Positions 37,501 through 60,421 of a stretch of DNA of 64,000 nt are shown here, piece after piece. Every line of letters begins with the position of its first letter. The first letter of the stretch is position 1. Location of the stretch: positions 14,501 to 78,500 of the forward strand of contig FLMG01003792.1 of the NCBI GenBank assembly GCA_900088475.1. The letters run 5' to 3'. The stretch comes from Hyphochytrium catenoides. Its lineage: Eukaryota; Protista; Hyphochytriomycota. A program made the position numbers and the translations under genes. The notes beneath the pieces are model-generated. The model saw nothing but the letters and a program-made list of their open reading frames with translations, searched no databases and was not told the origin of the DNA.

Positions 37501-40500
37501 CATGCGAATCTCAGTGCTCTCTCGCACACACCGCGCCGCCGCGACCTTTGTTGGAGGTACGATATTGCCAATGATGGACTGCATCGCACTGTCACCACCA
37601 TACGGAGCAGCAATGAATGGCGTTAGTAAGATGGCTGGAGAATCATCCAGACCTCTTCGACTTACCTCTTGGGCACGAAAGAGAATACCATGGATGGCGT
37701 GCCACCGTCATTTACGCGCTTTGTTGGATCAAGCAGCTCAGCTGTGAGGTTGAAATGTGCTCGTTCTTCTGGTGTCTGTGGCAGGTTTACATAGCTATAG
37801 GAGTTCATGGTGTAGGGAGCTGAAGGACTTGCGCTAATGCCAAACGGAAGAGAGATATTAGGTAAAATAGCCCGCAAGTGGTATTGAAGTCCTCGAGTCA
37901 ACAGCTTCCTTTCGATAGGCTCCAAGAAGACCGATCTTGCGCTGTCAGCCGTAGCTGAGTATCTGCTTACGTCCGATCGAGCCAACAGCTTCGAACCCTG
38001 GAGCAGCTCCACCCTGATGCTAGAAAGATTCGTACCTGTGGGCATCATCATAATACAGAAGGCTAAGCAACGAGGTATGGTCACCTTATTCCTTGGAGTC
38101 TACTAGTATCAAAACCTACCACTTGTATTGAAAAAATACGTGGGCACACCGAGGCCGGTTAAGGTTATGTCAGAAGTCGGGGTGAATTGCATCGCTCTCG
38201 CCACAAAAACCATAGAAGCGTTCGACATCGGCAAGCCCCATCCTTGTGTGTGAGTGGTCTCTAGGAGATACTGCACGGAAAGATTGCCAAGGGGACGCTC
38301 CCTTGGGTATCTAAGATTGAAAAAGCAAAACGAGATGAGTATGGGCCCACGACTCATCGCCATCACGTTTCTTTCTCCATACCGGGTATAGATCGCCGAC
38401 ACAGGCGAGCAAGCTTGATAAGGCAATGCATTGTCCCACGATTGAGTCCAGAAGTCCCGTGGAAGACTGGTTGCCATTGAAGAAACGGCCATTCCGTACT
38501 CACGCTCATTGTTTGGTTCGATGGCTAATGGATGGAATTCTCCTAACACCGGGTCATACCTGTCTGAGCCCGCACAACTCAGTAGCACGGGCTCGTGCAT
38601 AAGAGCAGCCATGAAGTACATTTGTCCACGTCTCAGTAGAAGAGGCGACTCAAAGGAGGTTACCAGTCGGTTTCGAGTGACGTCTGACCAGTCCCCTAGG
38701 TAGACCGAAGCCAGCCGGGATCCGCTGATATAGGGTGCTGAGACCGAATAGGCCTCATAGATTCCAACGTGGTACGTCGGAGTTTGTGCCTCCATAGTAA
38801 ACGGTAGAGCCACGGCTGCACCAGTGAGTAGAACATCCTGTAGCGGCGTGAACTGGTACCCTACAATCAGGCTCCTCTCTTCATGTAACTTAGGACCACT
38901 GAATGGTACTATTGATGCAGGAGCAAGATACCCTTTAGGTTGATAATCGGGGCCGATGGCCTTGGATTTCCTGATGGTGATAGATGCGGAATGAAGTAGG
39001 AATCAGACATAAGTTATGGCGAGAAAAAATAAAAGTCGAGCTTATTATCTCTCAATAAGGTACGTACCGTGCAAACAAGAAGGTCAGTGGGACTTTGGGT
39101 GACTCAAGCACACTGCCAAGAGTAGTGGTGTTGTTATCTACACTTGAAGTCAACATTGTCACCATAGTATGTGTATAGTGTGTCACGGTGAGCTCGAAGG
39201 GCAGCACACCAGAAAGAGTGTAACGCAACCCAGGTTTAAGAGAGATTGACTGCCCCAAAGCACCATAGGCCATGTAGGAATTGGCTCCTTCATAGTCGAA
39301 TGAGAGTGAATCTGACATAGAAGGCGGAGGCTCTATCGACAACGAGAAGGAGGTCAGTAACTTCCCGGATCCTTGCTCGCTCAACTGGAGGGCGACGTTC
39401 GTCATGGCGGATTGAGTTAAGTTAGACCAACACCCTCCCGAGGGACTTGGAAGCACCGACCCAAAACTGGTGACCATTAGCTCTTGCTGCACAGTGAAGG
39501 TGAACGAATAGCTGGTCTGACGCTGATTACATAGGTGCACACTGGCAAATTTGAGGGCCGCCTCGCCAACCGGACCAGGTGCATGTCTGATAGGAGCGGA
39601 AAGGGAATCACTTCACGAGGAGACTCGATCCTGCACCGTGACATCTTAGCTTACCTTCGGAATTTTATAGTTAGGACTGGCACCTCTACTTCATCCCGCA
39701 AACCCGGACCGGGGCAGAAGCCACTCCTAGCTGTCCTATTACCAGCATACTGCAGGACGAGTTGTGGATCTAAACTAGCGGGAAGAGAGCTTGTGCCCTG
39801 ATAATATGCTATCGTGAATGCCGTGGTTTGACCACGGAATTGGGGTGACCTCTCGACATGGCGAGGCCCAGAACGGAGATATTTTCCCGGAACAGTAGCG
39901 GCCAGATAGTACGTCGTACCAGCGTGAAGAGTAAAGGTTCCTGGAAGATGGTAGTACGCATAGTCGTCGCCTTCGTGAAGAAAGGCAGCGAGTACGGACA
40001 GTCTGAAGCGGGTAGACCCTCGAAGTACCAAATTCTCATCGTAGATCCCCAGCTCCAGCCTTCCCATGTCTACGCTCGGGCTCCCCAGTTGGTGGAAGGC
40101 GTCCTCAAGAGCTTCACGCAGCAGGCCTACAGCTAACATGGATGTTGATATCTCTGGTTTGACCTGAAGCAGGGCAAGAGTATGGACTGTCTGGAGATCC
40201 TTTCGCACGACGGGGAAGAAGCCCTTTTGATCAAGGAAAAGAGGTGTTCCGACCCCCGAATAGAAAGAGTTGGACCTAGGAGAAAAGCCAGAGAAACGTA
40301 AGGGTTATTGTAAGGGTCGGCAGCGCAACTCGTCATGCCTGCTTCTAACCTGGTATACATGAAGCCAGCGCCATTCCAGAGGCCAGATATGGCCCAGGGT
40401 GCATTTCTCACAGCCGAGGTACAATTGAAGGATGTCCGCATGTCACATACAACGTCAAAGCGTATGGACTCCTCGGAGAACATTGACCATACTTGCGTTT

Positions 40501-43500
40501 GTGACATCTGTATAGTCAAAGACAGAGATGTCCGCAGAGCATACCTGCGCCCTCGGCGCAGTCGCACCGGTGGCCTCACTGACATATACCTAAAACCTCT
40601 AATCAGTTTTCCTCTTCTTGAACTAAATAACCCCTCAGCGACCACTTGATTTTGGTCATCCACCATCACTACAGCTTGAGTATCTCTAGTGTGGTTGGTA
40701 CATCCTAGGCAATTCTCCTGATTTAGATCTACCAGGCCCAGCGACGTTATAAGGATGTCTTCGTAAGGGTAAAAGTCAGTCGACATCAGCGGTCCAGCTA
40801 AGCTGTCCACCCTAATTACACTTGTATTCTGCATTGCTACTGCTTCAGTATCAAAGTCTTCATCTCTGTCGGAGGAAGACCTGACCAAGGAAAGAGCCAG
40901 TCAGAAGAATTAACGCCAAGCAACACAATTGAGCACTAGGTATCGTTTCAGACTTACCCGCCTCCGAAGGAGAGTTGTGGCACATAAGGCAGCAAGCACT
41001 GCGCGTTCCAGGTCAAAGAGGAGGTGACTGAACAAGAGGGGACAGAACATGTCCTCGACTCTCGGCGGAAGGCACTAATATTCATGCCGCGCACTCCCTC
41101 AGCTCTAACCGCGGCGTCCACCAGTTCCCAGTGTAGAGGTTTTGGGAGACCGCCTAGTTCTAGACCGCTACACCCTTCAAGGACTGAGGGGTAGCAACCA
41201 GATAGACCAAGTCGGTAATCGATCACCTTCACGTAATTGTTGCAGCCACTTGCCACATTCTGTGTAGCCAAGGTCATTGGAAGCTCAGCGGTCAGAGTAT
41301 ACGTGTATCCGGATTCCAAAAACAAGCTCCTGTTCAGGCTGAGATAATGACTGTAGGGGAACAGTGTGACGTTGACTAAGAGAGAGGGCGGTGATCCGCT
41401 CTTATAGATTGAGATTGGAATGGCAGCGGAAATGAAGTCCTGCTGCAACTTCATCGTCCTGTCTGGAGTAGGGAGAGTGTAGGAGTTGATGAACCCTTCC
41501 CGCTTAAAGTACAATCCCTGCACCTCTATTGTTCCCTTTGGTACGATAAAATCATAGCCCACTTTGCTGGTATCTACGGAAAGCAGAACCACAGACGCTG
41601 ACGCTGGAGGTGGAGCTGTTGGAGGTGGAGCCGTTGGAGGTGGGGCCCCACTGGGTGGTGGAGAAGGTTTTGACTGGGTATCATTACTGGGTGCCTCGCT
41701 GCCATAATGATTTCATAGAGGTTTTGGGCTTTATTAGCTCCTTGGCATGGGGAAATTAAAAGAAAAGCCTTTCACAAACCTGGTAGGAAGATACGTGAAT
41801 GTCATCAAAGCAGCAGGGTCCAAGGTCCAGGTCGAGTTCTCCCTTGTGTACCACATCGCGGTGCTGGAGTAAGGGTCATTCGCATACAGCCAGTGGCTAA
41901 TCCGGTGGCCGATCGTGATGTTCGGGTTGACCAGGAAAGACGCAGCCTGACGACTAGAGACATTGAAGACTGGGAGATTAGCAATTAGGAGGTATGAAGT
42001 ATTTGCCAGCAGTTGCGGCGCGGGGGGATAGTAAGCCGGTCCGCTAAAGCCACTAGTCCCGGGATAAGTGTTGAACGAGTTGTAGGCGTTTGTCTCAGCC
42101 CTTCGAAATCTGCCTCCAGCCGCCTCTACTATCGGATCAACTACCTCAACCACAGCGCGCGCAACTTCATAACCATATAAAGCATTATAGATGGCAATAG
42201 TCACGGGCCCATCCCAGCCTGAGGTTAATCCGGACGAACAATTATTCCATTGTGGCTCAACCACACCCAGCCCAGTGAGGGTCATATTCAAGCTTGGCCT
42301 GAACTCGTATCCCAACAAGACTCTACCCGGCTCTAGAGGTGCTCCGCTGATGGGTTTATTTCCTATGCTGGAGCTGGAAGGGCAAGAGTCCAGTAGCAAT
42401 TGGCCCATACGTCCAGCTGGAGTTCCCGATGGTTCTCCTGAGGGCCTGCAGAAGGGCAAGGGGACTTTACTTTGAACTACAGATCTTTGATGTATCGTAT
42501 TGAAAGATGACAGGTTTACCTCACGATAACCATGCTAACCGCAGAGAGATTTTCTCTAGCTAGCAATAGTTCGGCATCCCCTTTTATTGGCCACCAAGAG
42601 GGAATTTCAGCACTGTCAAGGCTTGAAGTCGTGTTAACTCTCGGCAGGGAGAAGAGAGTAGCATTGCCGACCCCCACAAGACTTGCTAAGGTTGACGTAT
42701 TTATCTCTCCTGCCGGTCCCAAGACCCCTCCATTGGAGATGTTTGCGAAAGTTGTTTGCCTGCGTCTCACAAAGGGAAGCAGAGCTAGAACGCCATAACG
42801 GCCTCCCGCTGGGAGAACCATCCCTGAGGGGAGGCCTCCCACATGCTGCATTTCCATGATCGCTGACCATCCACCTACCACGATGGATGCGAGAAGAGTC
42901 ATGTTGCCACTATCCGTAAGGTTATAGACTCCAATTTTCCCATAGAGCTCACGAGCATTTGCTAAATAGGTTCCATTTCCAACGCAAATGTCACCTGAAG
43001 CTCTGTATAGTCCGAAACCCTTAAGGAAAACAGTGCTTTCGGTTGAAAAAGTGAAGCCAGAATAGACACCGGAGTGGACCTTGATGTGGCAGATATCAGG
43101 ATTCCATCCAGTAGGGTTAGAAAGTGGGAATACGCTGCCGCTGCTCACCATTTTCGTGGTCGGTACCCTACAATAAGCCACAAGATTTGCGAAGTTAGTA
43201 GGACTTACAGCGGATGCAGACGAGGACGGAAAGGGCGCTAAGCTAAGCTCGGTACCTGTAGTAGAGGAAGTCTAGGAGACCCTTTATAGATTCATTTCTG
43301 CAAAATGATGCGAGACACGGCTGAAGGTTGAGGTTATACAATGTGTAGGGTAGACCATAATTGGCAGGTCCAGAGGACCCTAAGTCCTCGTAGCTATTTC
43401 GTGATGGGAAAGAGAAGAAAGACGACTCAATCTGTATAACGTCATCAGGACTCATCGTTGATGGAGGTTGCCCATTGCCATTTGATCTTGATGTGTTCAC

Positions 43501-46500
43501 GAAGTACGGAAGTCTGCCTACAATTGTATACCGCTCCCCTTTTCGCAGAATCATAGAGTTCTCAAATCTTAGGGAAGAGTAAATCGTCCCGCCCAACTCC
43601 TGCAGTCTGCGGCCGCTCCCCGGCCCCACGCGAGCGGAGTTTAGAAGATAGCCACGAGCATCGTAAATGCCCAATATACTTGACCATCGGGCACTGTAGA
43701 CCAGCTCTTCCGATTCCGTAGCGTCATACAGTCCCCTATCATTACCATTTATCACGTTGGTGATATTCTCTTCGTCACAAACCCCAGTCCATGCTACGGG
43801 GCTAGCAACGCCCATTGCGGCAATGTAAATATCAGCACGAACTGTGAAGGAGAAACCCGTTTCGACTGACTCCGCAACTCCACAGGAATCAAACGTTGGC
43901 AAAGGCTGGAATGGTTTGGCAAATGAGTACTCATAGCCCCTGTTGAAGGTGCGAATGAGAGGCAGGAGAGCGTTACGTTGATAGTTCAGTCGGGGATTGA
44001 TAAAAACAAGGCCACCGCTTTACACCTAGACCTATGCGTGATTGGATACACTTACCTCGCATATAAAATGTCAACGATTGGTAGCCAGGAGCCTTCCGAG
44101 TGCCAATAGTCAGATCCCGTTCCTGAAACTATCTGAGTAGCCGGCACTGGTGGGAGAGTCCAGGGGAGATCGTCCCCAGGAAGAAATCCCGTGGCTGGAG
44201 TGCGGAACTTGGAGAGTACGGTTAATCTCTCGTTCCAATTGGAACTTGCACTTCCTACAATTTCATAAGAGACCAGGGCAGTGACCGCATATCTTCTTCC
44301 CGGGTAGAGCGTAGTGGGTCCTTGGTCAAGGATACTGTAAGCAGCTCCCTCTGACATGTACTCCGGTCTAGCTGATGAAGCTGATCTATGAAAAATTTTG
44401 GTGGAACCAAGAAGGAGCCCTGAAGTCATATCATAAATGCCGACGGGTACCGCACTCTCCAACGGTAAAGCTCTCTCGCTACCATATACTGTTACTGGAC
44501 TCAGGACTCCTACAGCCGTAATCACCGTGGGCACGCGGACCGCTACTTCAAGGCCAACGAAGGAGCTGATAATAGGGTCTACTGTTCCATATACTGGGCT
44601 GCCTGAATAGTAGCTGATCAACGACTCACCCTCAACCGAACCAGTTGCTGGCCTGTATATAATACGAAGCGGTAGAAATGAGGAAAAAACTATGGGCGTC
44701 AGAGCGTGACAGAGATGCTGTGTCACTCCAATACTGGTACTTACCGCGTGTACAGGAAAGAGCTTGGGATGCTGATGCCTGCACTACCAAGTCCTTCTGA
44801 ACTGTTTCCACTTAAGAATTCACCCTGCCCTTCAGTGTTATTCCCAACATTTACCGATCTCGTAGCCCAGCCGTGAAGAAGGCGGCCTAATCTGAACCCC
44901 GCTCCCAAGAACGCAGGTGCCATTCTTATAGGAGCCGCAGAAAATGTGTCATACGGAGCCTCCACAACGATGGCATATTCAGTGTCTGGCCTCATTTGTA
45001 CCGGCGGCAGTACAGCCTCGTATAGGTAGCTGTCCTGATAGTGACTACCTGCTGTCACGGAGACAGAATGGACCATGATATTCCGCTGAACCTCCCATAC
45101 CGAGACTACAACTTGAGGGCTTAGCGAGTGTGGTGGAAAGAAATATTCTGAGGCTCCAAGAGCAGTCAGAAGAATACTTCTAGTTGGCCAGAACGTGATT
45201 CCGCTCGTATTCAACAAGGGTAAGTTCGAAGGTTCTTGACCAGCAATTATCACTGCATTTTCCCCCGCCACTGCAGTGCGCAACCTACGCGGAGGACGTC
45301 GGCAAACTAAGAAAGCACCAACGCACAATCAACTGTTGTTGTGTTTCACACGTACCTGTCAACAAACAACCTCGGCCTGTGGGAATAGTAAAGAGCACTT
45401 TCCGATCCGTCGATAGTAGTGTTAACGGTGTCATGAAGAGGTGGCTGACATGTTCCATTGACGCTCATGTCCATGCAAACGCCAGTTAGGCTCATGTTGA
45501 TGTGCGCCACCAGACGGGTCCACCACCACTCCAGATTGCCTTCGCCGCTCAACGGCTGGTAATACTCGGACTTAGCCAATGGCCAGGGCAAGGCTTCGCC
45601 AGAAATGTTCGGCGATGTGGTAGCGAGACCACCCAAATCCACACCAAACCTGTATCCGGACACTATGACGCTCTCTAGATTGGGGTTGGACGTACTTTCA
45701 GCCGTTAGGAGGACCATGGGCAACCGGACAAGCACACTATAACTCTTCCCTGGCGTAAGCACAATCGGAGGCTCTACTCTTGCGTGAGACTTGTAAGGCG
45801 CCAAAGTGATATTTGCAAGTGATGCTCCCGTCATCGTCTCGTAAAGCCAGAGAGTCAGAGGGCTGGACTGGAAGGTAGACTGCAGTAATGAAAGGTCAAC
45901 AGAAGTGTTTGAGTCTGGACTTGCACCATAATGAGAGATCACGTGACTGATTGTCCTGTTGAATTCAAGACCAAAGAGCTTCCAAGGACCGGATCCCCAT
46001 ACGGTGAAGTCGTAACCAGCAACATTTGGAACCGACGCAGCATAGAAAACTGGCTGTTGGATGACGGGTCTGGGTAGATCAGGAAAAGGTGTTGGTATGC
46101 CGCCTGTCGTCCCATTTGTACTTGATTGGTTGTCAACCTGCTGCCATTGGCTGTGAAGTAGATTATTAGAGCATTCACGCAGTATATTGCTTCTAAAAAC
46201 TACTAAAACGTTACCTTGGTAGCGGTGGAAGGTACGAGAAGCTTAGCAGCCGAGCGGGATCCAAACAGAAGTCATTCACGCTGTAGCTGGCGTTGACGTC
46301 CTGCGGATGCCAGACATAGCGGGACGCGTAGAAGGAGTCATAGCCTACGCTAAAGGGCCCACTCGATAACCGAGACCCGACGGTGATATTACTTCCAACA
46401 AATAGGTTGGAGGACTCATATGCGCAGCTACCGGGATAGAAGGCAGTCGCTGGGACGTTTGCCACTAAAGAGTAAATTCTGTTTGGCTGCAGGACCACTC

Positions 46501-49500
46501 CACTGCCACTCATAGTGTTGTTAACGTTGTACGGCCAGGAAAGAGTAGAGGGCATGATCGGATGAAATCTAGCTCCAGATACATCGCTAAGACGGGGGCT
46601 AAAGGTCTCAATATCAAAATCTAGAATACGTCCTGCATACTTGTCAAAGAGACCGACCCGAATGGGCTCGCCCCAGCCCCTCGCGCCATTGAGAGTAGCC
46701 TCTGACGTGGCATTATCCCCACATGTCCAGAGAGGCTCCGCTATTCCAAGGCCTGTTACATTTAATGATGTGGAGAGAGTGAATTCGTAGCCGATGATGA
46801 CTCTGCCAGACGCGTTTCTGGTGTCGGGATTGCAGGAGTGCAACACGACGTCTGGTAGGAGCACCGCAAGCTGCCCTGGTGGCGCAGTGTACACCCTGAT
46901 AGGCGTGGAAGGATAGGAATAACGAAAGGCGTCCAGTAAGAGGTTTATGCCTGCGCTTTCAATTTCATTGCTTACCTTGAGAATAATATTGATACACTAG
47001 GTAGTAGTGGTCCTGGCGTGGTGCTTGGCGTGGACCATAGCCAGGGCGGAAGAGAATGGCCCCACTTCATGAAGTTTTCAGGAGCGATATAATCGTTGTG
47101 GGACCATCCTGAGAAGAGGAGCGAGCCAGAATTCCACCATGAGCCCCATGAAGAATAAGATGCTCCTTGATAGCTCGAGTTCGGTCGCGATATATTCGAA
47201 TACGCGCGGGCAAAAGGCAGAACTGCAGCCACTCCGTAACTTCCTCCCTCTGGTAGTAGAATAGGGGTTTCAAGGCCCCCAGCTTGCTGCATGCCATTTA
47301 TGTCCGAAGACCATGGACCGATCATCATGCTCGCAATCAGGTACGGACTCGTTGGATCAGTGAGGTTGTATAGCCCTAAGTTAGTAAGCACGTTCCTGGT
47401 GTTCAATGTAGTATGGTTTCCAAGGCGACAAACTTCGTTGTAAGGCGGCAGCGCCACACCAAAGCCTTTTATGAAGACCGCCGCCGATGTCGAGAAAGTA
47501 AAGGCCGAGTATGAACCGTTCTGGGCTCTGATGTGACAGATGTCGCTGCTGCTGCGATAAAGGCTCGGCAGGAGTTCGCTAGAGTAAACTCGGGAACTGG
47601 GTTGTATTCTGCCGCAGGACAAAGACAAAGAGTCTGTGAGTGCGATCGATAGGAACTTTTACGGGTGGTTTACCAACAAACTGAAGAGATACCTTATGAG
47701 CATCATATTCAGCAAGCCGCGTGCTGCGCTAGTGGTACAGTTTCCAGGACTGTCAGAGCAGGACATAGTAGTATGGTTGATGTTTAGGTATTCCAAGCGG
47801 TCAGGAAGTCTGTGTTCGCCTCTTATGAGATCGGAACCGTCGGAGACTCTTTGTTCAAAAGCTCTTCCGATGGTAAGGACAGGCAGCCCTCCGGAAGCAT
47901 CGTCAGACAGTTCAACGGCCGCGGTTGCAAGTCTCGTTAACCTGAAGGGTAGGACTCCGACGAGGGTATACTTTTGCCCTTTTAGGAGAGTAAGAGAAGA
48001 CGGGATGGACGATGATGTCGAAGCACGAAGAACAGTTATACTACCGAAATAGGACACGCTACTACTCATGCTGGCCTGGGCCGCGGACGGATCATGTTCG
48101 TAAGCAAGATCGGTCGGGCCAACCACCGCGGACGCCAGCAAAGTTCCACCGTCGTCATAAAGACCCATTATGCTTGACCACTTGACGTTCCATAGAAGAC
48201 CTTCCTTGTCATCGATGCATGGATTGCTAATAATCTCGTCTTTGGTTGGAATGTGAGTTCCCATCTCAGTAAGTGCAAAGTCAGCAGTAGGGACAAAAGA
48301 AAACCCAGTCAATGTCTCTTCCGGAACGTAACAGGCATTAGCCATCTTTGGGCTGAAGTAGGGCCTGGCAAGTGTGTCCACGGCAACTTCAAAGCTGGAA
48401 GTGCTACAAGAATAGAAAGAGGATGTGAGTAGTGAAGTGACCCCACATCTACGTTTCGGGGTTACGTGATCATGATTGTTCCAAGCGCTCTCTAATTTGC
48501 GTACCTGGAAAACAAGAAGTCCACCAGTGGAACCGTTCGTGACATGGAGGGATCATCGTAGTTGTATAGACTACTCGATGCTAGGACTGGAGCAGTCTGG
48601 GGTAAGGCATGCCCAGGTCCGAACCCTGATGGTGCCGCTCCGTAGAGCCTTGATACAACTATAAGTCTTTCGTTATAGTTGGAGTAGACGTAGCCCTCGA
48701 CCACATAGGAGACAAGTGCCAAGATAGCATAGCGTCTTCCCGGAAGCAACGTTATTGGTCCATCCTCTATGACGTTGTAGACTGCTGCACCAGAGGACTG
48801 GCTTGGACTGGCAGAGCCAGAAGATCGATGAAAAACGTTCGTTGAGCCCAGGAGGCTACCGGCGGTTAGGTCATAGACGGCCACGGGTACAGCAGACTCC
48901 AAGGGTCCGGATCCTTCTCCGTAGGTGGTCCACGGACTAACTATTCCCAACGCAGTCACCGACGTCATGACTTGCGGAGAGACCTCGATGCCCGTGAAGA
49001 AGCATGCAGCTTGTTGAAGCTGAGGGTGGAGGCCGCCTGGTCCGCTAGAGTAGGTGCTATACCAGAGGGGAGATTTTCCGCTAAGTGTTCCAGCAGCCGA
49101 CCTGTCAAACCCAAAAGAGAATTGTCAGTGCAAGAGATTGCCCAACCACCTACCAAAATAACTCATAATGGAATAGATTCTACCTCGTATATAGAACAGA
49201 CATAGTTGGAGCCTCGACTGGTGTTGCCCAAATGTAGCCCTGATCCCATGCTGGAAATGGGCTAGCAATGGGTCCCAAATAATCAAAGCTGGACTCCATT
49301 CCCCACCCTCCTGACATAAACTTTGGTACATTCGTGTATGACGTGTTCATGATAACCGCATACTCCGCGCCGGCCATGAGCTGAATGGCGGGCAAGACAG
49401 CTGCATACCGGAATCGGTCAATGGCAGCATTGGCGAAGTTAACCGTCACATTGGCAAGCAGAATGCCACCTTGTTGTTGAGCATAGAGTGAGACCGTGGC

Positions 49501-52500
49501 CTCGAAAGGCCCTATCTCGTTGGCCTCGTCCACAAGGCTGTATTTGAAGTAATCCTCCCATACTCCCAGTGCTGTGAGGAGTGTGGCGTGCTTAGGACGG
49601 AAAGAAAAGCCGGTAATGAGACCTCCCTTCCACGTCCCATTGATCGCTAGTGATTGATTTCGTAAGTCCTCGTCCATACTAACGGCGCTGTGGCCGCTTA
49701 CAGACGGGCGCAATCTGTCAAAAGAAGAGAGTTAGAACGAGCCAAAGATCAGGTAAGCTGCAAGACAACAGACCACCCACGATGCTCACCTGGCTGTCCA
49801 GATCGCTGGCAGATGTGGGTATAGGACACGGCTCCCTACACCTAAACCGCCATCCCATTGAGGGATGATACTTCCATTGCCAGAGTTCAGCGAAGAGTTG
49901 ACACCCGCAGATGAACTATTCAGACTTTCGCCTCCAAGTACTTCCGACCAGACGAAAGTCGCATCGGCCACATTTCCATATAGCGGAAGCCTGTGGGTGT
50001 GTTGGAATTGAACTACAGAGCTTCCATTAGCTAGGTGTTCGATGGTGGATTCCGGCGCGAGGCGATACGCTGAAACTGCGATATTGGGCTCAAGAAAGTC
50101 CCAGGGTTTTGCGGTGGTGAGCAACAGAGCAGGCACAGCCACTAATACAGAGTATGTCCTGCCAGGTAGTAGGACTACCGGAGTATCAAACAGTACGCGG
50201 TCACTGTACGGCAACAATGTATCAGTTGTCAAGAGGACGGATGAGCCACTGGTCGTGTCGTAAATCCAGAGGGGAATTTCAGCGGAGGCCAACAGAGCCT
50301 GCACTTGAGGCATAGTGGGTACTGGACCATCGGCAACGACAACATCCACCGCTTGACGCTTGAAGTCAAAGCCTGAGATTGACCAGGGCCTATCGTCCAT
50401 GATACTGAAATCGAATCCAGCCACCATCGGGGGTGATGGCAAGTAGAAGGGCCCGTATTGAGGAGTCGACGCATTACCGTCCGGTAGGGGAGGTGGCACT
50501 GTAGGAGTTGGCCTGCAGGGAGCACAGTTAACAACAAGGAAATAAAGAACCATTGTCCCTGGAATAGAGCAAGCTTTAAGAAGAGGAAGGAAGACCTACC
50601 CACTAGGTTGTAGCTTCTGATACGTGAAGGCGACAAGACCGAGACTGTCCACTGGAGGAAGGCTATTCGAATAGTAGTCGCCTGTAACTAGCCAAATACT
50701 ATCTGGACTCGCATAGTATGGTCCACCTTGTTTACGCTCCCCGAAGCTGATATCCTGTTGTTGAACGCTGTATGTGGTCCTCATTGGAGTTGTCGTGGGT
50801 GGAACTGGCAAGTTGACTACCAAGGTGTAACTCTCCTGACCGCTCAGGCGAAGTCCACGAATCTGGGTGGGCAGGCTACCGTCATAGGACAGTTGTACGA
50901 CAGGGAGGTAATCAAGCACTGTAACCCGCATGCCAAGAGCGGGGAAGAAGGGATTGCTTGGTTCCACTCGAGCACGGAGTACTTCCACGCCTGTATGATC
51001 GTTATAGATAGCGACCGTGATAGCATGTCCCCAACCATATCTCTGGGTATCGATGTGCTGCGAGCTGAAGTTTAAAAGAGACGAACAATTCCACAATGGC
51101 TCAGCAATGCCAATGCTTGTGACGACGATATCGGTCAATGGTTTGAAGTTGTAGCCCAGCAGCAAACGGTCTGTTGCGGTCTCGGTCCTGGGGCAACCAT
51201 CAACGACGAGCTCATGAATCTGGACAGAGCGGTCTCCTGAAGGTGGGATTGGGCGTCTAGGAAAAAAAATAAAGACGGGCAGCAATTCAGCAAAACGAAG
51301 GTTGGACAAGCTTCACAACGCCCATGCCCTACCTGTTAAACATTGCAAAGGCGGATGGCAATAGGGATTCGATAGGGTACGATGCTGCAAGAGTCTCATT
51401 GGCGCTGTACGCCCATAATCTCTGGGACTCGAGCTCTGTAGGAAGTAACCCTCCACTTGCCATAACTTTATTCGTGTCATGGGCGTCGTAAAAGGAGGTA
51501 GAATAGCCCACTCCATTCCACCATGGACTTTTCCCTGGGCTCTGGACCCAAGGTAGCGCATAGTCACCCACCACACGTACAAAAGGCAGTGAACCAGCGA
51601 TGGCATACAGCTTCCCAGCTTGTAGATGCACCTTAGTTGAGAGTACTTCCAATTGTTGTTGCATGCCGATTGTCGGTGACCATGGCCCAATAGTCAGCGA
51701 GCCCAAGAGCGATAATTTGCTAGAGTTAGGGGAGGATGCATTCAGGCCGTAAACGCCAACCTGAGATGAACCCATGCCCATGTTTAGGTGGAACGTCCCA
51801 TTCAGTCGACAGAGGGGCTCATCATGCGATGGCATGATGACTCCAAGAGTTGAGATCTCAACGTCCTCAATAGGGACAAATGTGAAGCCTGACAGGAAGC
51901 CATATGGTACCGGAAGTGCGCAGATGCCTCCAGCACCTGTGTGGGGCGGGAAGATTGCGGTATCGCCAACGGGGAAAGGTTGGAACGGATGCTCAACCCT
52001 ATGACAGAATGTCGTTACTTCTTGCTGTTATTATGTTCTTCAGGCTCACCAAGAGACAACATTTTAGAGCACGAAGACAGAGTAAAGAAAACGCTAGGGT
52101 TCGGTCATACCTTGTCAGAGCCAAGTCCAGAAGTCCATCCATCCCCTCTGCAGAAGCCACACATGAGGAAGAAGCAACATCGCAACCTTCTCCCAGCCCG
52201 ATGGCCGCAAGGTTGTTGAAGAGGCGGAAAGGCGGAATATTGTTCCCTGTAGAATAGGGCACAGGTTTTGGTAGATACCTTCTCTTAACCTCCACAAAGT
52301 TGGCTGGACCAACACCAAGGCTCGTCGCATTGCCAAATGCTTGAAAATGAACAGGAAGGAGTCCAACGACGGTGTATGTACTGTCTGCTCTTAGTAACTG
52401 AGCCGAGGAGTTGTGGAAACTGCCATATAAGGTGCTGCCTCGCTTGGTACTTCCAGGTCCGATGATGGTCGATAGAATAAGCTCCCCCTGCCAGTCATAA

Positions 52501-55500
52501 ACTCCAATAACGCTAGACCATCTGGTTCTGTCCCGAAGTTCTTCCATAGTATCAGGGTCTGAGGTACAGTTCGTCCCATTGTTATTGTTCAAGAGATCGC
52601 TGTTCCATGACTTTGGAAGTGCGAAACCAACAGCGGACAGGTAAACATCCGAAAGAGGGACAAAGCTGAAGGCCACTACTGCTTCCTGAGGGATTGCACA
52701 AGCCTCAGTGAGCTCTAATCCATACAACGGCTGGCCCACCAGAAGTCCATCTCCGTAGGGCACCCTAAGGGATGGGATTATTTAGTACACTATTAATAGA
52801 ACTGTTTTTACTAGAATAACCGTTTGCAACGACTTACTCTGTGTATAGCAGATCAACCATGGGTAGTGAGGCGGAATATGAGTATTGCCCCATCGTACCG
52901 AAGCTCCCGCCGTCTGCTACAGAAAACAACGGTGCGATGCTGGGTAGAGGATCACCTGGACTGGAGCCCCCCATGGGCGGGCCCTGTAACCACGAGTAAA
53001 TATCCAGCAGCTCTGTGGTCTGACGTTGAGGCAATGAGAAAGTCCCGCCAATTCTGTAAGACACCCGGGCCACAATTCCGTAACGCCTCCCAGGGTAGAT
53101 AAGAATCGGTTCTTGCTCTAATGGGCTATACAGAACTGATGGAGAAGTATGGTCTACCCTCACTGAAGCTGTGGATCGATGGAATACGGTGGTTGAACCA
53201 AGCAAAACCGATCCCGCAGTAAGGTCATAGATCCCCACAGGGACTGCGGTCTCTAGTGGTGTCAAGCCCCACTCGAAGAAATAAGGACTTAGAACCCCAA
53301 GAGCTGTCACTTTAGTCACGACCTTGGGAAGGACCTGAAGTCCTACGAGGGAGCTGCCAGCAGGGTCAAGATAGCTTAGGCCTCCAGAATACACCCCATA
53401 GCGCACCGGAGAATTGCCTTCAACGGTTCCTGGCGCGGGCCTTGAAAAAATAGAATATTGTCAACGAGAGCATTCGAGTTAGCAGACTAATGTAAAGGCG
53501 ACTGGAACCGGCGGCAATCACGCACCTGGTAAAGAGGAAGGACACTGTCGGTGACGGAAGTTCGTTAGCTTGAATGTGGCTGTTATAAACGGTGTCCTGC
53601 GTACTGTTAATGCCGTAGCCGTCGGCAAACTCAATGAAATCTCTCAAAGCAAAATGTGAGGAGAGCCTGGCCGAGAAAGCACCATCTGCCACTCTACGAG
53701 GCATTCCGGGAAGTATTCTCATGACGATGCTGAACTCAATATCTGGCTCCAGCTCCAATGCGGGAAATAGAGCAGCGTAGTGGTAGCCATCTCTGACCTC
53801 GTTGACCAGACTTACCGATGTCGAGGTCAAGAGAATTTGGGACTGGTAATCGATGAGGTTCACCTGTACCTGAGCAGGAGTAGCTCCGACCATGCATAGA
53901 GGGCAGTCTAGCTGAGAAGTTAGTAGCTCACTCCAGACCCCAAGGGCAGTTATCAGAGCTCTTCGCCTGGTGATGAACCTGAAGCCGACTTGTTGGCTTT
54001 CGGTCCAGGTGCCATTGAGCCAGGATAGTGTAGAAGCGGCTTCTTCAGGTGCAAGCACTCCTGGCTTCCCGGCAACGGATGGCCTTAAACTGTTTCAAGT
54101 AGTGGTCAACAACAAACGATAAAACGTCCATACGCATGGAAGGAAACAGAAAACTTACGCGCTGACTTGCAAAGTGGGCATATGAAATAGAGTAAAACCT
54201 TCCTCTAATGCAGCACTCTTAGTGATGGCTGGTGACAACTGCTCCCCATTCTGCGATGCGCCGCTATCGGAGCCAGTTGGCATAGTTCCATTAGCAGCAT
54301 CTGACAGGAGGGGCCACCATGGTGGAGCTATATTAGGATATCCATAGTGCTCCGCCAGCGGAAACCACTCTGCTGTGATGTTAGACCATCCACCTGTCAA
54401 AGGATCAAACGTGGCATTACTCCGAGCGCCTAAACCTAAGCGGTAGGCGGAAACGTCCACCCCATGGCCGCCGGGATACTGACTGATTTTGCGATTGGTC
54501 AATAGAATCATGGGTAGTGAGGCTAGAAGCGTGTATGTCTTGCCAGCAGCTAATACTACCGCCCTTTCGAACCGGAGGCCATCTTGATGATCGGGTAGGA
54601 TCTGATGGGCAAGAAGCTGGTTGGAGGCAGTGTCATACAGCCAGATGTTAAGACTAGCATTGCGTAAAACGTCTCGGGAGCTGATCCCTCCCCCTCCTCC
54701 TACACTACTATTGCTGCTGTTGACGTCCCACTCCATTATGCTGCGATTGAAATGCAGACCCCAACAGGATAAGGGGATTGTTCCGGTCACGGTGAAGTCA
54801 TATCCGACTAAGTTGGGCGCTGATGTAAGGTAATAGGGGCCGGTCCACGCATTTTGTGGCGGAGGTGTTGGAACTGGAGCTTCCGTGGGGGGATAAGTGC
54901 TGTGATACGTGAGGAGAATTTAGCCATAATTAGTATTGTTGTTGTTCAAATTCCGTCGATGATGAGAGACTTTGAAGGGCCACTTTCTTTGCTGGAGTTA
55001 GATGGACCAATGGGGCTGACAGGAGAAGAGACCTACCTATAACCTTCCAGCAACGGCACGATAAGACTATATGCCGTCCCGTACAGTGCGCTGTTACCTA
55101 AAACTGTCGTGCCCATGTTCAAAGCAGGCTCTGAATGGTTCCAATAGGCCGGCAAGTCTCCTTCGTCAAGGTGAAGGACATTTCGAGCGTCGTTGGCCCC
55201 AAACCTGTACGCTGTGACCACAATATTATCCTTGAACGGGACACTAACGTCTACCTCAGTTAGCACTGTGAAGGGAAGGGAAACAAGGATTGTATATAAC
55301 ACTCCACCCTGCAGAGTAAAGCTGACCGCATTGCGGGTTGAATATGGTGGTACCGAGCCATAGTAAACAGGATGAAAGTAGCCTGATGCCCTTGAGTAGA
55401 CTGCAATGTATGGATATTGCCCGGCAGTCATTATCTTCTCGGTCAAAGTGGTGGTCTGTCCAGTTGTCAAGTCTCGCAGCAAGGCACCTTGGTTATAGAG

Positions 55501-58500
55501 AAGCCCATCCACCTTGAAGTCACTCGTGCTTGTGACATAAAAATCGTATCCGAGCAGCGATGGTTGCGAGAGCTCGAAGTATGCACCTGGCACACCGGGA
55601 CCTGACGGGAATAGCCTGATAAAGGGGAGAATGTTCAGATAGGGCTGGACAACCAGGAAAAAGCAACAAGAGCCTTACCGGTCAAATGCTACTGCCACTG
55701 AGCTTAGCAGCTGGTGAGAGTTATCCGGAATAGGTTGGCTTTCGGTGCTTTGCAGATTTGATGCCAGTCTTTCGCTATTTATTTCGAGTGGAAGAGCCAT
55801 TGGCAATTCAAGAGCTTCCAACATGGTACGGTAAACGTTGAAAGACCGAGCATATCCGACTCCGTTCCACCAGATATCCTCTGAGAAGCCTTCGATGACC
55901 CTAGCGAAAGGTAAATTTCCAATTACGGCGTAGTCACCACCGGCCCGTAGGTGAACTTTCGATGCCAGTCCTTCTAACTGCTGCCCACCATAGAGAGGAG
56001 ACCAGCTGCCAACTGTGACGGTGGCTATTAGGGTAAAGACTCTTGCTGGTGAGGTTGCGTTCGAGGTGACATTGTAAAGGCCAACTTGCGAAATAGTGTT
56101 CGCCATGTTAGGGTAGTATACCCAGTTGAACCTACAAATATCCTCCTTGAAGGATGGTACGGTGATCCCCAGTGCTGACACCTCGATATCCTCAGTAGGG
56201 GAGAACCAAAATCCAGAATAGACACCAAATTCTGCCTTCAAAGAGCAGGATGGTAGTGCCGCCGGCAAAGGCGGCGGCAACAGCAGCTGCAAAGCGGGCG
56301 ACAAAGGGCTGGAAATAGGCGGTGAGATCCTAGGATGGTGCCACGGATGGTTAATAAAGGTGAAGAGGAACAAGAAAGGAATCAGTATTGACACCAGATA
56401 CTTAGAAGAGAGCTCGATCATCGTTAAGCGACAAACCGTTTGGGATAATCGTCTGTTATAGAATGGTGACAAAGTTGCCTTACCTGACATATAAGACATC
56501 TAATAATTCCTCAATAGCAAAGTCTGGTTCGCAGTCTGAAAAAGGCCCTATCGCGCAGCCATCACCAAGCGGCAAAGCTGAGAGTGATTGAGGAAGCGAC
56601 GAATAACCCCTTGTTTGTGCCTCTGCCTCCGAGTCGAAGGTAATGTATCGCCTGGTCATATGCACCAGAGGGCTGGTGTCTGAGCTTGAGTTACTCGCGT
56701 TTCTAGTGTTGTTGAGGAAGAATGGCAGGGAGCCAACAAGAGTGTACAGTTTTCCTGGTCGTAGGACTAGACCTGAAGAATTGTGCATGGCGCTGTAGAC
56801 CACATCCTGCTTTGTCTGATTGTTGATAGCAGAAGAAGAACTAAATCCTCTGGGGCTTGCGGGCCCGACTTGTGTCCAATCTATCAGCTGGCCTAGGTCG
56901 TCGTAAAGTCCTACTGTGGCAGCCCATCGGGCGCTGAACCGCATGGACTCGACATCATCTTCCTCCAACGAGCATGAGCTATCATTGCCTTCCGCAGGAG
57001 AGTGGCTACTTGCCATCCAATCGGGAAGTACAAAGCCAACAGCGGAGATGTACATATCAACTTGCGCCACAAAGCTGAAAGCCGCTAGCGTTCCTTTGGC
57101 AAGCCCACATGATTGGGCAGACGAGTTCCGGCTCCCGAATAACGGTTGGCCAAAGATAGCGTTGGCCTCGTCTGGCCTGGGGTAAGCATGGAGTTAGTCA
57201 GGTGTTAGAGCAAGCTCACAAACCCGCGCACCTAGTGTAAAGGAAGTCGACCATGGGCAAGGACTCTGAATAGGTGTACTCAAATCCGGCTCCTGTCGTG
57301 TCGAAGTTCTGACCGACCGGATACAGACTGGCAAATGGAGGAAGGGTATCTCCATTGCTTTGCGTCCCTGGGAGGCTTATACTTCCTTTGAGACGAGAGA
57401 AGACAACAATTGGACCCTTCTGATGAATCGCGGTGGTCCCAGGTATGCTGTACGACATAAAAGCCACAATGCCATAGTACCGCCCAGGAAACAGAGTTAT
57501 GGGTCCATTCTCTAGGGCATCATAGACAACCCCTGGCGAGGTGACACCTGAACTAAAGGAGGCTGCCGAAGGATGAAAGACCTTGGCAGACGCAAGCAAG
57601 ATGCCACCAGCGCTAAGGTCATAGATGCCAACGGGAATGGCAGACTCAGGAGGCGACAGTTCGCTGCCCCACAGGTTCCACGGGCTGAGAAAACCCACAG
57701 CTGATATCATGGTCTGAATTCTTGGGGTGATCTGCCAGCCCATGAGGGAGCTTCCTTCTGGATTGATGGACAGCGTGTTGCCGCCAAAGGAAGGAGTGTA
57801 AAGCAGGGGTGACTCTCCTTGTAGCCCACCGGTGGGTCGTCTATCACAAAGTATTCCGACCAGTGGCAAATACATATGAGATATGAATAACATCAGGTGG
57901 ATTGCGGTTAGCACTTGCTACAAGTGGCTTTTCTTAAGTAGTACCTTACCGTGTGTAGAGGAAGGAAACTGCAGGATAGACTTCGTTCCCTTCGAAATTA
58001 GGGTCGACCTTGGGCTCAGTTTCCCATAGGGCTGAGAGGTTATGACTGAGTGATGACCCCTCAAGGCATTGGCCCATGATGAACTGCCTGCCAAGAAGGT
58101 CGGAGGTAGTGGTGGAGCTATTCAGCATAAACCTTGGCATTCCAGCAGCGCTGGTCAACACAATGCCGTACTCCGTACTGGCCTTGAGCTCCACGGGAGG
58201 GAAAACGGCAGCGTAGTAATAGCTAGCTATGATGTCATCCCCAAAACTCACGTCGGCAGCTGCAAGGATAAGGTTTGACTCGCGACTTATCAGCTCTACT
58301 CTGACGCCTGGAGGACCGACAGTGTCGTTGCCTTCAGTGGGCGCGAAGGGTGGTAGCTGATCCCAAGACAAGAGCTGATTCCAGACTCCCAAAGCAGTCA
58401 ACAATGCCCCTCTCTTTGTCCAGAAACTGAACCCAACACGAGTGCCAGTGGTCCATGTTCCGTTGACAAATGGGGGAGAGACTGCACTGGTAGGGTTGTC

Positions 58501-60421
58501 GTCTCCTAGCGATGCCACCAAGCCGGGGGTACCAGCTACCTTTGGCCTCGGCCTTGCAGAATTTGTTTAACCGAGTAGCAGGAGTCCGTGGGTAAGGATT
58601 GCACACGAGGACCATGTCAGCGATTCGAATGGTTGTCTTACCTTGCCATTAGAAGGTTCGGAACGTGAAACAGCGTCATTCCCTCAGCCAATGCAGCCTC
58701 CTTGTTTAGAACAGAAGCCATCTCACCTGCTCCGGTATAGCTGCTATCAGTCTCGTGTTGATGGTCGACATTGTCCGGCAAGTAGGCCCACCAAGGTGGC
58801 GTCTCTCCAGGGTAGCTCTGGGTGGTGGCAATGGGAAAAGAGTAGACAGGCCAAAATGACCACTGCTCCCCGGTGGCAGGACCGTACGACGCATTACTGA
58901 CGGACGGTTGCAGACCGAAGCGGTATGCAATAATGTCCAGGTTATTACTTCCTGTGCCGTATTCAACTACTTGGCGATCTGTTAGGAGAATCATTGGAAG
59001 GGACGCCACAACGGAGTATGCCTTTCCGGCTCCAAGGTTCACGGGCTTGGTAAATCTAACTCTTTCTTGAAAGGCCTCTAACACCTGATGGGCTAGGACC
59101 TGGCCCGTGCCTGTGTCATATACCCAAACGTTCAAAATGGTGTTACGCAAAGTGTCCCTTATAGATTGTATATTTGTCTGGATGTCGCCTTCCATCGGTG
59201 ACCATTCGGCAATACTTCGGTTGAAGTAGAGACCCCAGCACCTCATGGGGATGGACCCAGTAACAGTGAAGTCATAGCCAACGAGATTAGCCTCAGGACT
59301 CAGGTAGAAGGGTCCTCTCCATGACGCAGGACTTTCTGTCACTGGCAACCCACTTATCCTGCGGCACAAGGAGAAGGCAGGAACAAGGAGGTAATCAGCT
59401 CAAGTATGAAGTAGGTGCTGCAATGCAATCTGGTGATCTTCCGAGTGAGTCTCACCTTAAACTCTGGAATGCCGGGATGAGAAGTCCAGCCTCCGATCCA
59501 CAATTGCAGCTAGTCACGATGGCATTGGAAGCAATCACTGACGGAGGATCAACATCATTCCAATACCCAGGAAGAAAGCTCTCTTCAACATTACTGAAAT
59601 CGTCCAGAAACCTTGGGTCGTTTTCTCCGAGCCTGTAAGCTGAGATGCCGATGTCGCTCGCCGATATGTTAGGCTCCAGATTGGGCTTTGTAAGAATTGT
59701 GAAAGGCAGTCTCAACAGCAAGGTGTAGTTGTTATAAGGATACAAGCTAACAGCATCAAGAGAAGAGAGCTCTTGGTAGGGCGAGAAGACACGTCTTGCA
59801 ATCTCCTGGAGGTTGGGCGCACGCACGTAAAGTGCGAATTCAATGTACTGCCCCATGGACTCAAGCTTGGCACCCAAAGACCTCACTTCGCCATTGGTCA
59901 CATCTTTCACAGCCACTCCTTGGTTGTAGATCAATCCCTGTAATTGAACTTCACTAGCAGTGTCTTGCACATAGAAGTCCAAACCAACGATTGAGGGATT
60001 GTAGTCAACGATGAAGGCGTCCGCGACGCTGCACAAAAGGATGCAAACAGGTGTATGAGCGCGGCAAGCGACGACATATCATATGTGAAAGGAGAGAGAA
60101 AGAACGAACCTGTCGGCGGGTGAAGGTGGCTCAGTGGTGGACTGTGAGAGCACGACCTGGGATAACAATTAAATTAGCTCTCAGTAATAGAAAGTTAGCC
60201 AACAAAAGGAAACTAACCGTTCCATGCTCAATGCTGAGAAGGTGGGCAAAGCACAGTGCCCAAAGCCAGGTAGTGGCTCGAAGTTTGGTCCTATAGAGAG
60301 TGGTGGCAACAAGATAAGTAACGACCACAGCAACATAGTTGGTCTCCCTTCTTGTACAATAACAGAAGTTGCTGTTGAAAGACTTTGGGTATTAATCTCA
60401 CCTTCTGCTCAATGGCTCCAT
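34530..60421 (-). CDS. giant secreted multi-domain protein (about 7,500 aa, about 39 exons, about 35 tandem DUF4082-like beta domains)
   Basis: Hand-spliced GT-AG model. Exons (high-low): 60421-60402, 60290-60218, 60156-60110, 60028-59456, 59358-58642, 58552-57950, 57840-57232, 57176-56484, 56329-55679, 55615-55037, 54899-54159, 54089-53526, 53440-52838, 52764-52111, 51998-51333, 51256-50600, 50512-49790, 49714-49184, 49101-48505, 48403-47693, 47608-46976, 46895-46215, 46150-45356, 45284-44745, 44652-44056, 43939-43256, 43167-42520, 42445-41780, 41698-40958, 40880-40350, 40275-39655, 39586-39068, 38970-38383, 38310-38120, 38035-37666, 37588-36530, 36438-35881, 35811-35164, 35061-34530 (or a further short exon ending at TAG 34431). 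The frame is preserved at every junction. N-terminus MEPLSRRTKLRATTWLWALCFAHLLSIEHGTVVLSQ. Repeated core G(F/Y)xF..vtalG..v(G/w)iYD...g.lLa...L.pG..Y.v. Confidence 0.88.
42520..46895 (-). repeat. super-repeat unit 4 of the giant gene (G,B,C,D,E,F)
   Basis: G (GIAEPLWTC..GWG), B (AGYDFTV..FNRT), C (LLTALG), D (PLESAVPVGIYD), E (ARWSSILGIYD), F (DICHI..YSGFTFST). Confidence 0.85.
46976..51256 (-). repeat. super-repeat unit 3 of the giant gene (G,B,C,D,E,F)
   Basis: The first exon is type G (C..R.LLGY.F..GIAEPLWNC..GWG); the other five match B-F. Confidence 0.85.
51333..55615 (-). repeat. super-repeat unit 2 of the giant gene (A,B,C,D,E,F)
   Basis: The same six domain types in the same order as unit 1. 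Confidence 0.85.
55679..60028 (-). repeat. super-repeat unit 1 of the giant gene (domain-exons A,B,C,D,E,F)
   Basis: Type motifs: A GL(I/L)YNQG; B GPFYL..GYDFTV..GL.FNR; C NGTW..GF.F..ALLTALGVW; D ESA(I/V)PVGIYDL..VFH; E FSFV..RW...G.YD; F SGF.F..CR.N..VGLYN..G.WS. Confidence 0.85.

Follow-up and report, generated by a model that had tools for sequence, protein, structure and literature searches.

The window analysed here, a stretch of 64,000 nucleotides from the protist Hyphochytrium catenoides, carries on its minus strand a long series of related exons, for which a first-pass annotation had proposed a repeat of higher order, composed of blocks of six exons. The locus raises the question of whether such a super-repeat exists, how it was built, and whether the six-domain period serves the protein or is a trace of the way in which the protein grew.

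Super-repeat organization

Each of the 26 consecutive exons found between positions 60028 and 40958 (minus strand) corresponds to one domain of ~200 aa. Based on the exon table of the splice model, BLASTP and the domain tree, these exons were assigned to four complete units and the start of a fifth:

55679..60028, minus strand, unit 1: exons A 59456-60028, B 58642-59358, C 57950-58552, D 57232-57840, E 56484-57176, F 55679-56329
51333..55615, minus strand, unit 2: exons A 55037-55615, B 54159-54899, C 53526-54089, D 52838-53440, E 52111-52764, F 51333-51998
46976..51256, minus strand, unit 3: exons G 50600-51256, B 49790-50512, C 49184-49714, D 48505-49101, E 47693-48403, F 46976-47608
42520..46895, minus strand, unit 4: exons G 46215-46895, B 45356-46150, C 44745-45284, D 44056-44652, E 43256-43939, F 42520-43167
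40958..42445, minus strand, start of unit 5: exons G 41780-42445, B 40958-41698

The splice model reproduces the coordinates of the first-pass annotation exactly: the D exons have their 5' ends at 57840, 53440, 49101 and 44652, the first domain exon begins at 60028 and the 26th ends at 40958. The period, which had been put at ~4.3-4.4 kb, measures 4339-4449 bp. The claim that exons six positions apart are more alike than neighbours holds for the whole array: in an all-against-all BLASTP comparison, the best matches were located at offsets 6, 12 and 18 for 26/26 exons, with 28-48% identity and 50-208 bits at these offsets and only ~20-48 bits between neighbours. The mean Smith-Waterman score was 242, 179 and 166 at offsets 6, 12 and 18, respectively, versus 40-54 at every other offset, and none of 10,000 permutations of the exon order reached the observed Smith-Waterman periodicity. 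The motifs described for individual positions are present, namely E(S/T)A(V/I)PV.(I/V)YD..G..LL.S..(V/I)FH in the D exons, (R/K)W....G.YD with a C-terminal Cys pair in the E exons, and G.WS in the F exons.

Clades by position had been predicted beforehand, and the maximum likelihood tree of the domains (IQ-TREE) indeed groups equivalent positions, while a grouping of adjacent exons did not appear. Clade support was 100/100 for A, 97/92 for C, 100/99 for D, 94/93 for E, 90/96 for F and 99/98 for G. In a test of whether A arose from the B domain of units 1-2, the free tree placed A within B, but B monophyly was not rejected (p-AU 0.42). The tree requires six label changes, which is the possible minimum and was equalled by none of 200 shuffles, and the formula (ABCDEF)2-(GBCDEF)2-GB was recovered exactly from the 26 exons. 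By its offsets, its phylogeny and its block structure, the array is a higher-order domain super-repeat with a titin/nebulin-type organization (for the super-repeat concept, see PMC12241362).

Gene structure

The super-repeat belongs to a gene with a predicted span of ~26 kb and a predicted product of ~7,700 residues comprising ~35 domains, mostly one per exon. The gene as modelled and its parts located outside the units are:

34530..60336, minus strand, whole giant gene as modelled: candidate signal-peptide exon, ~35 domain exons and candidate last exon (~7,700 codons)
60218..60336, minus strand, candidate first exon (predicted): ATG at 60336, hydrophobic N-terminus (MLLWSLLILLPPLS...), phase-2 donor
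35164..40880, minus strand, degenerate tail of ~9 more domains of the same family: exons 40350-40880, 39655-40275, 39068-39586, then blocks to 35164
34530..35061, minus strand, candidate last exon: 175 codons and a stop, in-phase acceptor 102 nt past the donor of the last domain

The minus strand displays 34 consecutive stop-free blocks, with ~7,400 codons without a stop. Predicted donors are in phase 2 throughout (of the form ..R|GTRAG), acceptors are in phase, and predicted introns are 55-189 nt long. In the splice model, 26/26 super-repeat exons have a length divisible by three, phase 2/2 and GT..AG borders, with acceptors that are least sure for E05 and E06 and ambiguous for E17, E20 and E23.

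The 3.4 kb upstream of the array were scanned for an ATG, a hydrophobic core and a phase-2 donor of at least 6/8; the candidate first exon, which is joined by an intron of 189 nt to the acceptor at 60029/60028, was the sole match of this pattern scan, on which the putative signal peptide is based. An ATG with a hydrophobic peptide at 60077, in another frame, overlaps the acceptor tract of the first domain exon; it was left unused as a probable by-product of the pyrimidine tract.

Towards the 3' end of the gene, the B domain of unit 5 (B_E26) forms a long branch of 2.1 substitutions per site. The next four exons best match C, D, F/E and F, which is the expected order; a complete fifth unit was nevertheless rejected as unproven, because the scores of 5-21 bits fall within the cross-type range (up to 18-32 bits). 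In the tail, one domain is split by an intron, one exon contains two domains, and phase-2 splice sites persist. Five of its exons (E27, E29, E30, E32 and E33), none of which had contributed to the 26-domain profile, match that profile at 20-45 bits. For the candidate last exon, no Pfam match and low recognition in the Atlas were found; it is not DUF4082-like, belongs to no recognisable family and lacks a hydrophobic anchor, and neither a membrane anchor nor a known C-terminal domain was found for the giant protein.

In the six-frame translation of the window, matches to the 26-domain profile are confined to this array, with none on the plus strand. The array region contains no detected ncRNA or tRNA. 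A gene for an AGC kinase neighbours the giant gene; a search with this kinase yielded generic animal RSK matches only, which pointed to no taxon, and an exact look-up gave no record of it.

Duplication history

The first-pass annotation had ascribed the pattern to the duplication of a six-domain block, formally similar to that of titin and nebulin, and this is supported by the per-domain tree as well as by a tree of the units. The tree of the concatenated BCDEF domains has the topology ((u1,u2),(u3,u4)), both alternatives being worse by 53.5 lnL units (p-AU < 0.001 each), and therefore the duplications involved entire blocks of six exons (~4.4 kb); the trees of the individual types agree with the unit tree wherever they are resolved. 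Amino-acid identity over BCDEF is 42.5% between units 1 and 2, 35.0% between units 3 and 4, and 31-35% for the other pairs (overall span 31-43%). DNA self-comparison of the region from 34 to 60.5 kb (blastn, word 9, E<=1e-3) yielded no match, and the sole tandem repeat reported by TRF is a 15-nt motif in 2.9 copies at 41605-41647. The super-repeat exists at the protein level only and, judging from this amino-acid divergence and from the lack of DNA similarity, the duplications are old.

The array most probably started as six already very different domains (x-B-C-D-E-F), from which the whole six-exon cassette of ~4.4 kb was copied in at least two rounds, likely by in-register unequal crossing-over. 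The first split separated the ancestor of units 1 and 2 from the ancestor of units 3 and 4 (and 5), and in the second round each of these two ancestors was duplicated. The first position of the unit is occupied by A, which is B-like, in units 1-2, and by G, which is of a different type, in units 3-5. After these ancient events, the copies have been retained under purifying selection together with their position-specific features. Duplication of multi-domain blocks is the commonest mode of repeat expansion, irrespective of function (PMC1553488).

Domain family and predicted fold

All 26 exons score below the gathering threshold (28.4 bits) of the DUF4082 (PF13313) Pfam HMM, the best E being 0.13 for one exon. 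The profile built from the 26 domains matched 473 proteins at E<=1e-3 among 1.84 billion, with whole-library E values down to 2e-36; a Pfam scan of the eight top profile matches found DUF4082 above the Pfam cutoff in 6/8, and those top matches that have a source name come from bacterial MAGs or Sorangium. Alignment of the profile with Pfam-delimited DUF4082 segments (hhalign) gave a probability of 98.2% and an E of 5e-14 over 84 core columns.

An AF2 model of the domain (pLDDT 79.6, pTM 0.83) matches DUF4082 in seven of the 30 best AFDB clusters (TM 0.41-0.62) and in eight of ten ESM-Atlas shape rows (TM 0.54-0.65), in both cases with an rmsd of ~3 A. Compared with solved PHR domains, the model reaches Z scores of 10.4, 10.3 and 9.4 (rmsd ~3 A over 131-138 residues); this likeness is at the fold level only, with no sequence match to PHR (PF08005) at E<=10 in any exon. 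According to the profile search, the profile-profile comparison and the predicted fold, the domain is distantly related to the DUF4082 beta-sandwich, which is mainly bacterial, and has a PHR/lectin-like fold.

Across the protein and metagenome libraries searched, no close orthologue turned up. Word-indexed homologue searches with a D exon and with the 26-domain alignment, whose length filter leaves out giant proteins, found nothing, and a metagenome scan with the D-type alignment gave 93 pattern matches with no relative among them.

Read through its fold, each unit might tentatively be seen as a multivalent carbohydrate-binding cassette, with six lectin types of six specificities, whose block duplication would raise avidity in a surface coat, an adhesive or a wall protein. 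The predicted fold has relatives in the Cwp84 lectin-like domain and in CBM-like modules, but PHR domains, the best solved matches, are not known as lectins, which counts against such a function. Matches by Atlas features include DUF4082, Lectin_like and PHR clusters, and the domains co-occurring in the top profile matches include chitobiase C-terminal, PKD, lectin-like and dockerin domains. The best bacterial relatives adjoin genes for GH38 alpha-mannosidases, a LacI regulator and sugar ABC-transporters; no DUF4082 domain, however, has a known ligand, and DUF4082 was found to be named in two papers only, in passing in each.

Position-specific features

The protein as a whole contains 92 NxS/T sequons versus 40 +/- 5.8 in shuffles, a 2.3-fold enrichment. 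In the B, C, E, F and G types, sequons occur at 1.75-2.2 per 100 aa, and the D type, which has an Asn content of 1.8%, has none in 798 aa. The D type is also the slowest-evolving, with the shortest branches (0.38-0.62). The E, F and G types each have conserved Cys pairs of their own, which are kept in all copies. Together with the candidate signal-peptide exon, the sequon excess and the Cys pairs suggest that the protein is probably secreted and heavily N-glycosylated. The lengths of units 1 to 4 are 1282, 1269, 1284 and 1315 aa, respectively. These unit lengths, the Cys pairs of E, F and G, and the sequon-free, slow D type fit specialised positions; they do not demonstrate a ruler.

It appears doubtful that the six-domain period is itself under selection, as it would be in an extended rod whose unit of ~1,280 residues matches a periodic partner or lattice, in the manner of titin and nebulin, and whose glycan-free D domain provides a docking site at every sixth position. 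The tightly kept unit lengths would agree with such a ruler, as would the equal count of six in A-starting and G-starting units, but in-register block duplication, being the commonest mode of repeat growth (PMC1553488), yields a fixed period without selection on the period. The bare, slowly evolving D type and the Cys pairs conserved across all copies also point in the direction of a ruler; however, there are only four to five units, these are only 31-43% identical, they have no known partner, and the order of the domains is not clearly kept in the tail. We regard it as unlikely that the protein is an extracellular rod of a free-living protist with a true structural period, in which the bare, most conserved D domain provides a docking site every ~1,280 residues and which serves a periodic structure of the surface or wall as its ruler or scaffold. 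If this were true, the count of six would have been kept despite replacement of the first domain (A in units 1-2, G in units 3-5), and the protein would represent an extracellular, non-metazoan counterpart of titin and nebulin, derived from a domain family of no known function.

Coding status and selection

Comparison of the window with the contigs of three DNA runs yielded 40 listed differences (15 synonymous, 15 nonsynonymous and 10 intronic) and no indels. With a pN/pS of 0.32 over these listed differences (binomial p 0.0018), the gene is under purifying selection. It is very improbable that the array represents a relic, decaying or without function, or an artefact of assembly: none of the protein libraries searched contains the protein and its 3' domains are degenerate, but the stop-free codons with splice phases consistent throughout, the low pN/pS without indels, the independent contigs of at least 99% identity that run along units 1-2 (none of which covers the whole stretch) and the lack of any inter-unit DNA similarity able to mislead an assembler all speak against this. 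We consider it highly probable that the locus is one real, intact and very large minus-strand gene, encoding a probably secreted, N-glycosylated string of ~35 DUF4082-related beta-sandwich domains that grew by six-exon block duplication.

Comparison with known systems

The A-band super-repeats of titin consist of 7- and 11-domain patterns of Ig and Fn3 domains that arose by block duplication, with many domains encoded one per symmetric-phase exon. The protein described here resembles titin in being giant and modular, in having equivalent unit positions that are much more alike than neighbours, in its block-duplication origin, and in its one-domain symmetric exons. It differs in its domain, an unrelated DUF4082/PHR-like sandwich of ~200 aa instead of Ig/Fn3 domains of ~100 aa, in its probably extracellular and glycosylated rather than sarcomeric nature, and in having four to five units and no known periodic partner.

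The PHR domains of MYCBP2/PAM-Highwire-RPM-1 and of BTBD1/2 share with it the best solved structural matches to the domain model, but not a match at the sequence level, and are found as single domains or pairs in cytosolic proteins related to ubiquitin ligases. The secreted bacterial DUF4082 (PF13313) proteins belong to the same domain superfamily and are also built with copies in tandem, with 2-8 matched stretches in each protein; in contrast, the domains of the giant protein are ~50 aa longer, fall below the Pfam cutoff as single exons, and are found in a eukaryotic host with one intron per domain, ~35 copies and a six-type higher order. The seven-module super-repeats of nebulin likewise have a fixed, repeatedly duplicated unit size and an exon pattern that repeats with the unit (PMC1553488), but their modules are helical, of ~35 residues and with exon borders inside them, whereas here the borders lie exactly between the 200-aa domains.

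The mechanism is not new, since the duplication of multi-domain blocks is known as a frequent origin of giant repeat proteins. The value of this gene lies in its cleanness, with one domain per symmetric exon and six sharply different types that were block-copied at least three times, and in copies so old that selection alone explains what persists. Such clean, old block copies therefore provide a natural experiment on the constraint acting at each position, such as the putative disulfides in the E, F and G types and the lack of glycan sites in the D type. The array is also the first large eukaryotic context for the functionally unknown DUF4082 fold, for which it offers lectin-type binding or periodic docking as possible leads.

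Gene organization

The giant gene of the Hyphochytrium catenoides contig is located on the minus strand between approximately 60.3 and 34.5 kb, where 34 stop-free blocks of 145-422 codons each follow in succession. Each block is closed by a phase-2 donor (GTRAG directly after ..(Y/F)xR), and an in-phase AG acceptor preceded by a pyrimidine tract is found 55-189 nt past the donor. The first 26 blocks give predicted exons of 531-795 nt, all of which (26/26) have a length that is a multiple of three and are in phase 2/2; each would encode a single domain of about 200 aa, assigned to one of the types A to G according to its position in a six-domain unit.

Predicted landmarks of the giant gene
60336, minus: ATG of a candidate signal-peptide first exon, which ends in a phase-2 donor
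60028, minus: start of the first domain exon (splice model)
57840, 53440, 49101 and 44652, minus: 5' ends of the four D exons (splice model)
40958, minus: end of the 26th domain exon (splice model)
34530-35061, minus: candidate last exon, 175 codons

The D-exon 5' ends and the positions 60028 and 40958 in this splice model are identical to those of the first-pass annotation; the exon borders, like the expression of the gene, are predictions. The domain profile has no match in the window upstream of 60078 and none on the plus strand. In Pfam the candidate last exon has no match, its Atlas recognition is low, and it displays no hydrophobic anchor and no transmembrane or GPI-like end.

Another ATG, at 60077 (60030-60077, minus), opens a hydrophobic, signal-peptide-like peptide (MSSLAALIHLFASFCAAS...), whose frame is one base off that of the first domain exon and which overlaps the acceptor tract of this exon. 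The pyrimidine tract probably gives rise to this peptide as a by-product, and a one-base assembly error in the older read data may lie behind the frame offset. The sole DNA-level repeat in the gene is a 15-nt x 2.9 tandem repeat (41605-41647), which codes for a Pro-rich (PPPTA-like) linker where the 26th domain exon begins.

Several other features surround the gene. Three plus-strand ORFs have signal-peptide-like starts (32838-34058, 29279-30121 and 8161-9012); based on reading of their translations, they include a Pro/Ala/Thr-rich, Reeler-like protein whose hydrophobic C-end runs into an N gap, a Cys-rich protein whose tail is Ser/Pro-rich, and a putative PAN/lipocalin ORF. The single Rfam match above gathering score, to SNORD36, a C/D-box snoRNA (2970-3036, minus; 33.6 bits, E 0.15), sits upstream of an AGC-kinase ORF (4158-5420).

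A six-domain period

Exons six positions apart are more alike than neighbours. When all blocks were compared with each other by BLASTP, the best matches of 26/26 exons were at offset 6, 12 or 18 (28-48% identity, up to 208 bits), while neighbouring exons reached only about 20-48 bits. Mean Smith-Waterman scores were 242 at offset 6, 179 at offset 12 and 166 at offset 18, versus 40-54 at all other offsets up to 20, and the offset-6 value was never reached when the domain order was permuted 10,000 times. The maximum-likelihood domain tree (LG+C20) contains clades for A (support 100/100), C (97/92), D (100/99), E (94/93), F (90/96) and G (99/98), and a joint A+B clade (100/100). The seven type labels require six changes on this tree, the minimum possible, which was equalled by 0/200 shuffles. 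The exons are thus grouped by super-repeat position; a tree joining adjacent exons, which the first-pass annotation had named as refuting its reading, was not obtained. The order (ABCDEF)2-(GBCDEF)2-GB proposed in the first-pass annotation is exact along the gene.

Block duplications and the degenerate tail

The same annotation had put the pattern down to block duplication of a six-domain module, which is supported by the relationships among the units. For the concatenated B to F domains of units 1-4 (u1-u4), identity is 42.5% for u1-u2, 35.0% for u3-u4 and 31-35% for the remaining pairs. The topology ((u1,u2),(u3,u4)) lies 53.5 log-likelihood units above either alternative, and both alternatives were rejected (p-AU < 0.001, 1000 replicates, p-values approximate). 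Where resolved, the subtrees of the individual types agree, with u1+u2 grouped in B, C and F, less firmly in E, and u3+u4 in D and F. The copying therefore took entire six-exon cassettes at a time and went through two or more rounds. Units 1-2 begin with the B-like domain A and units 3-5 with G; since B monophyly was not rejected against a nested A (p-AU 0.42), the A/B split may have preceded or followed the unit duplication. The duplications are old, with branch lengths of 0.4-2 substitutions per site in the domain tree and no nucleotide similarity among units (blastn, word 9, E<=1e-3).

The exon design persists downstream of the 26th exon, where five of the eight remaining blocks, all left out of the profile build, match the family profile with 20-45 bits. 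The best types of the next four exons (C, D, F/E, F) follow the order expected of a complete fifth unit, but their scores stay inside the range that the type models give to other types, so that a degenerate fifth unit is no more than a suggestion. The 26 upstream exons keep strictly to one domain per exon, in contrast to the tail: one tail exon holds two domains that no intron separates, apparently through intron loss, and another tail domain is cut by an additional intron whose donor lies near 38139 (36442-37707 and 38112-39002, minus).

Evidence for a functional gene

Independent contigs from three DNA runs of this organism carry the stretch with at least 99% identity and no indels. Between 54100 and 60080, the 40 single-base differences listed comprise 15 synonymous, 15 nonsynonymous and 10 outside exons; they are twice as dense outside exons as within them, and pN/pS is 0.32 at 24% synonymous sites (binomial p 0.0018). 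Together with about 7,400 codons without a stop, these values argue for purifying selection on a functional giant gene.

Domain family and predicted fold

Single exons have no Pfam match, the best being DUF4082 (PF13313, a mainly bacterial beta-sandwich family) with E 0.13 in 1/26 exons. A 26-domain profile searched against 1.84 billion representative proteins retrieved 473 proteins at E<=1e-3, of which the top one scored only 142 bits; a close orthologue, or the gene's own product, is absent from this library. DUF4082 scored above Pfam's cutoff in six of the eight top matches scanned, and the top matches with a named source are from bacterial MAGs or Sorangium genomes. By hhalign, the 26-domain alignment matched six Pfam-delimited DUF4082 segments (probability 98.2%, E 5e-14, 84 core columns). 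One D domain was modelled with AlphaFold2 (pLDDT 79.6, pTM 0.83) as an all-beta sandwich spanning the whole exon, for which DUF4082 models made up 7 of the 30 best AlphaFold DB clusters and DUF4082 was found in 8 of 10 ESM Atlas rows (TM 0.54-0.65). In the comparison with solved structures, PHR domains (BTBD2 and MYCBP2) matched the model at Z 10.4, 10.3 and 9.4, the decoration protein of a cyanophage capsid at Z 8.9, and Cwp84's lectin-like domain at Z 7.9. All this makes the domain a divergent relative of DUF4082 that stays below Pfam's own membership threshold.

DUF4082 has no known function, and its name turns up in two papers, both times as a passing mention. Two of the best bacterial relatives adjoin sugar-utilisation genes on bacterial metagenome contigs (L001 6001-8934 and L002 6001-9351), namely two GH38 alpha-mannosidases, a LacI regulator, a two-component system and sugar ABC-transporter genes, a neighbourhood that faintly hints at glycan biology.

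Position-specific features

NxS/T sequons number 92 in the 26 exons, compared with 40 +/- 5.8 in shuffles. They occur at 1.75-2.2 per 100 residues in B, C, E, F and G, without enrichment in A, and not at all in the 798 residues of the four D domains, in which Asn makes up only 1.8%. Of all types, D evolves most slowly (branches 0.38-0.62), and it has no conserved cysteine. Cysteines are kept at approximately 23, 66, 207 and 215 in 4/4 E domains, at approximately 26 and 63 in 4/4 F domains, and at 21 and approximately 60 in 3/3 G domains. These sequons and cysteines, the candidate signal-peptide exon and the anchor-free candidate last exon would fit a secreted, glycosylated and disulfide-bonded protein.

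Comparison with known super-repeats

Units 1-4 comprise 1282, 1269, 1284 and 1315 residues. The first-pass annotation had raised a molecular ruler as one meaning of the period; the period may be one, but this reading is not supported, because in-register unequal crossing-over alone can yield a fixed period. Bjorklund et al. (PMC1553488) showed that repeats most commonly grow by several domains at once, the nebulin unit of seven being the textbook case. Formally the giant gene is a super-repeat like titin or nebulin, from which it differs in its domain family, its probable extracellular setting, its strict one-domain-one-exon design and its host. It represents an unusually clean case of an already known super-repeat organization.
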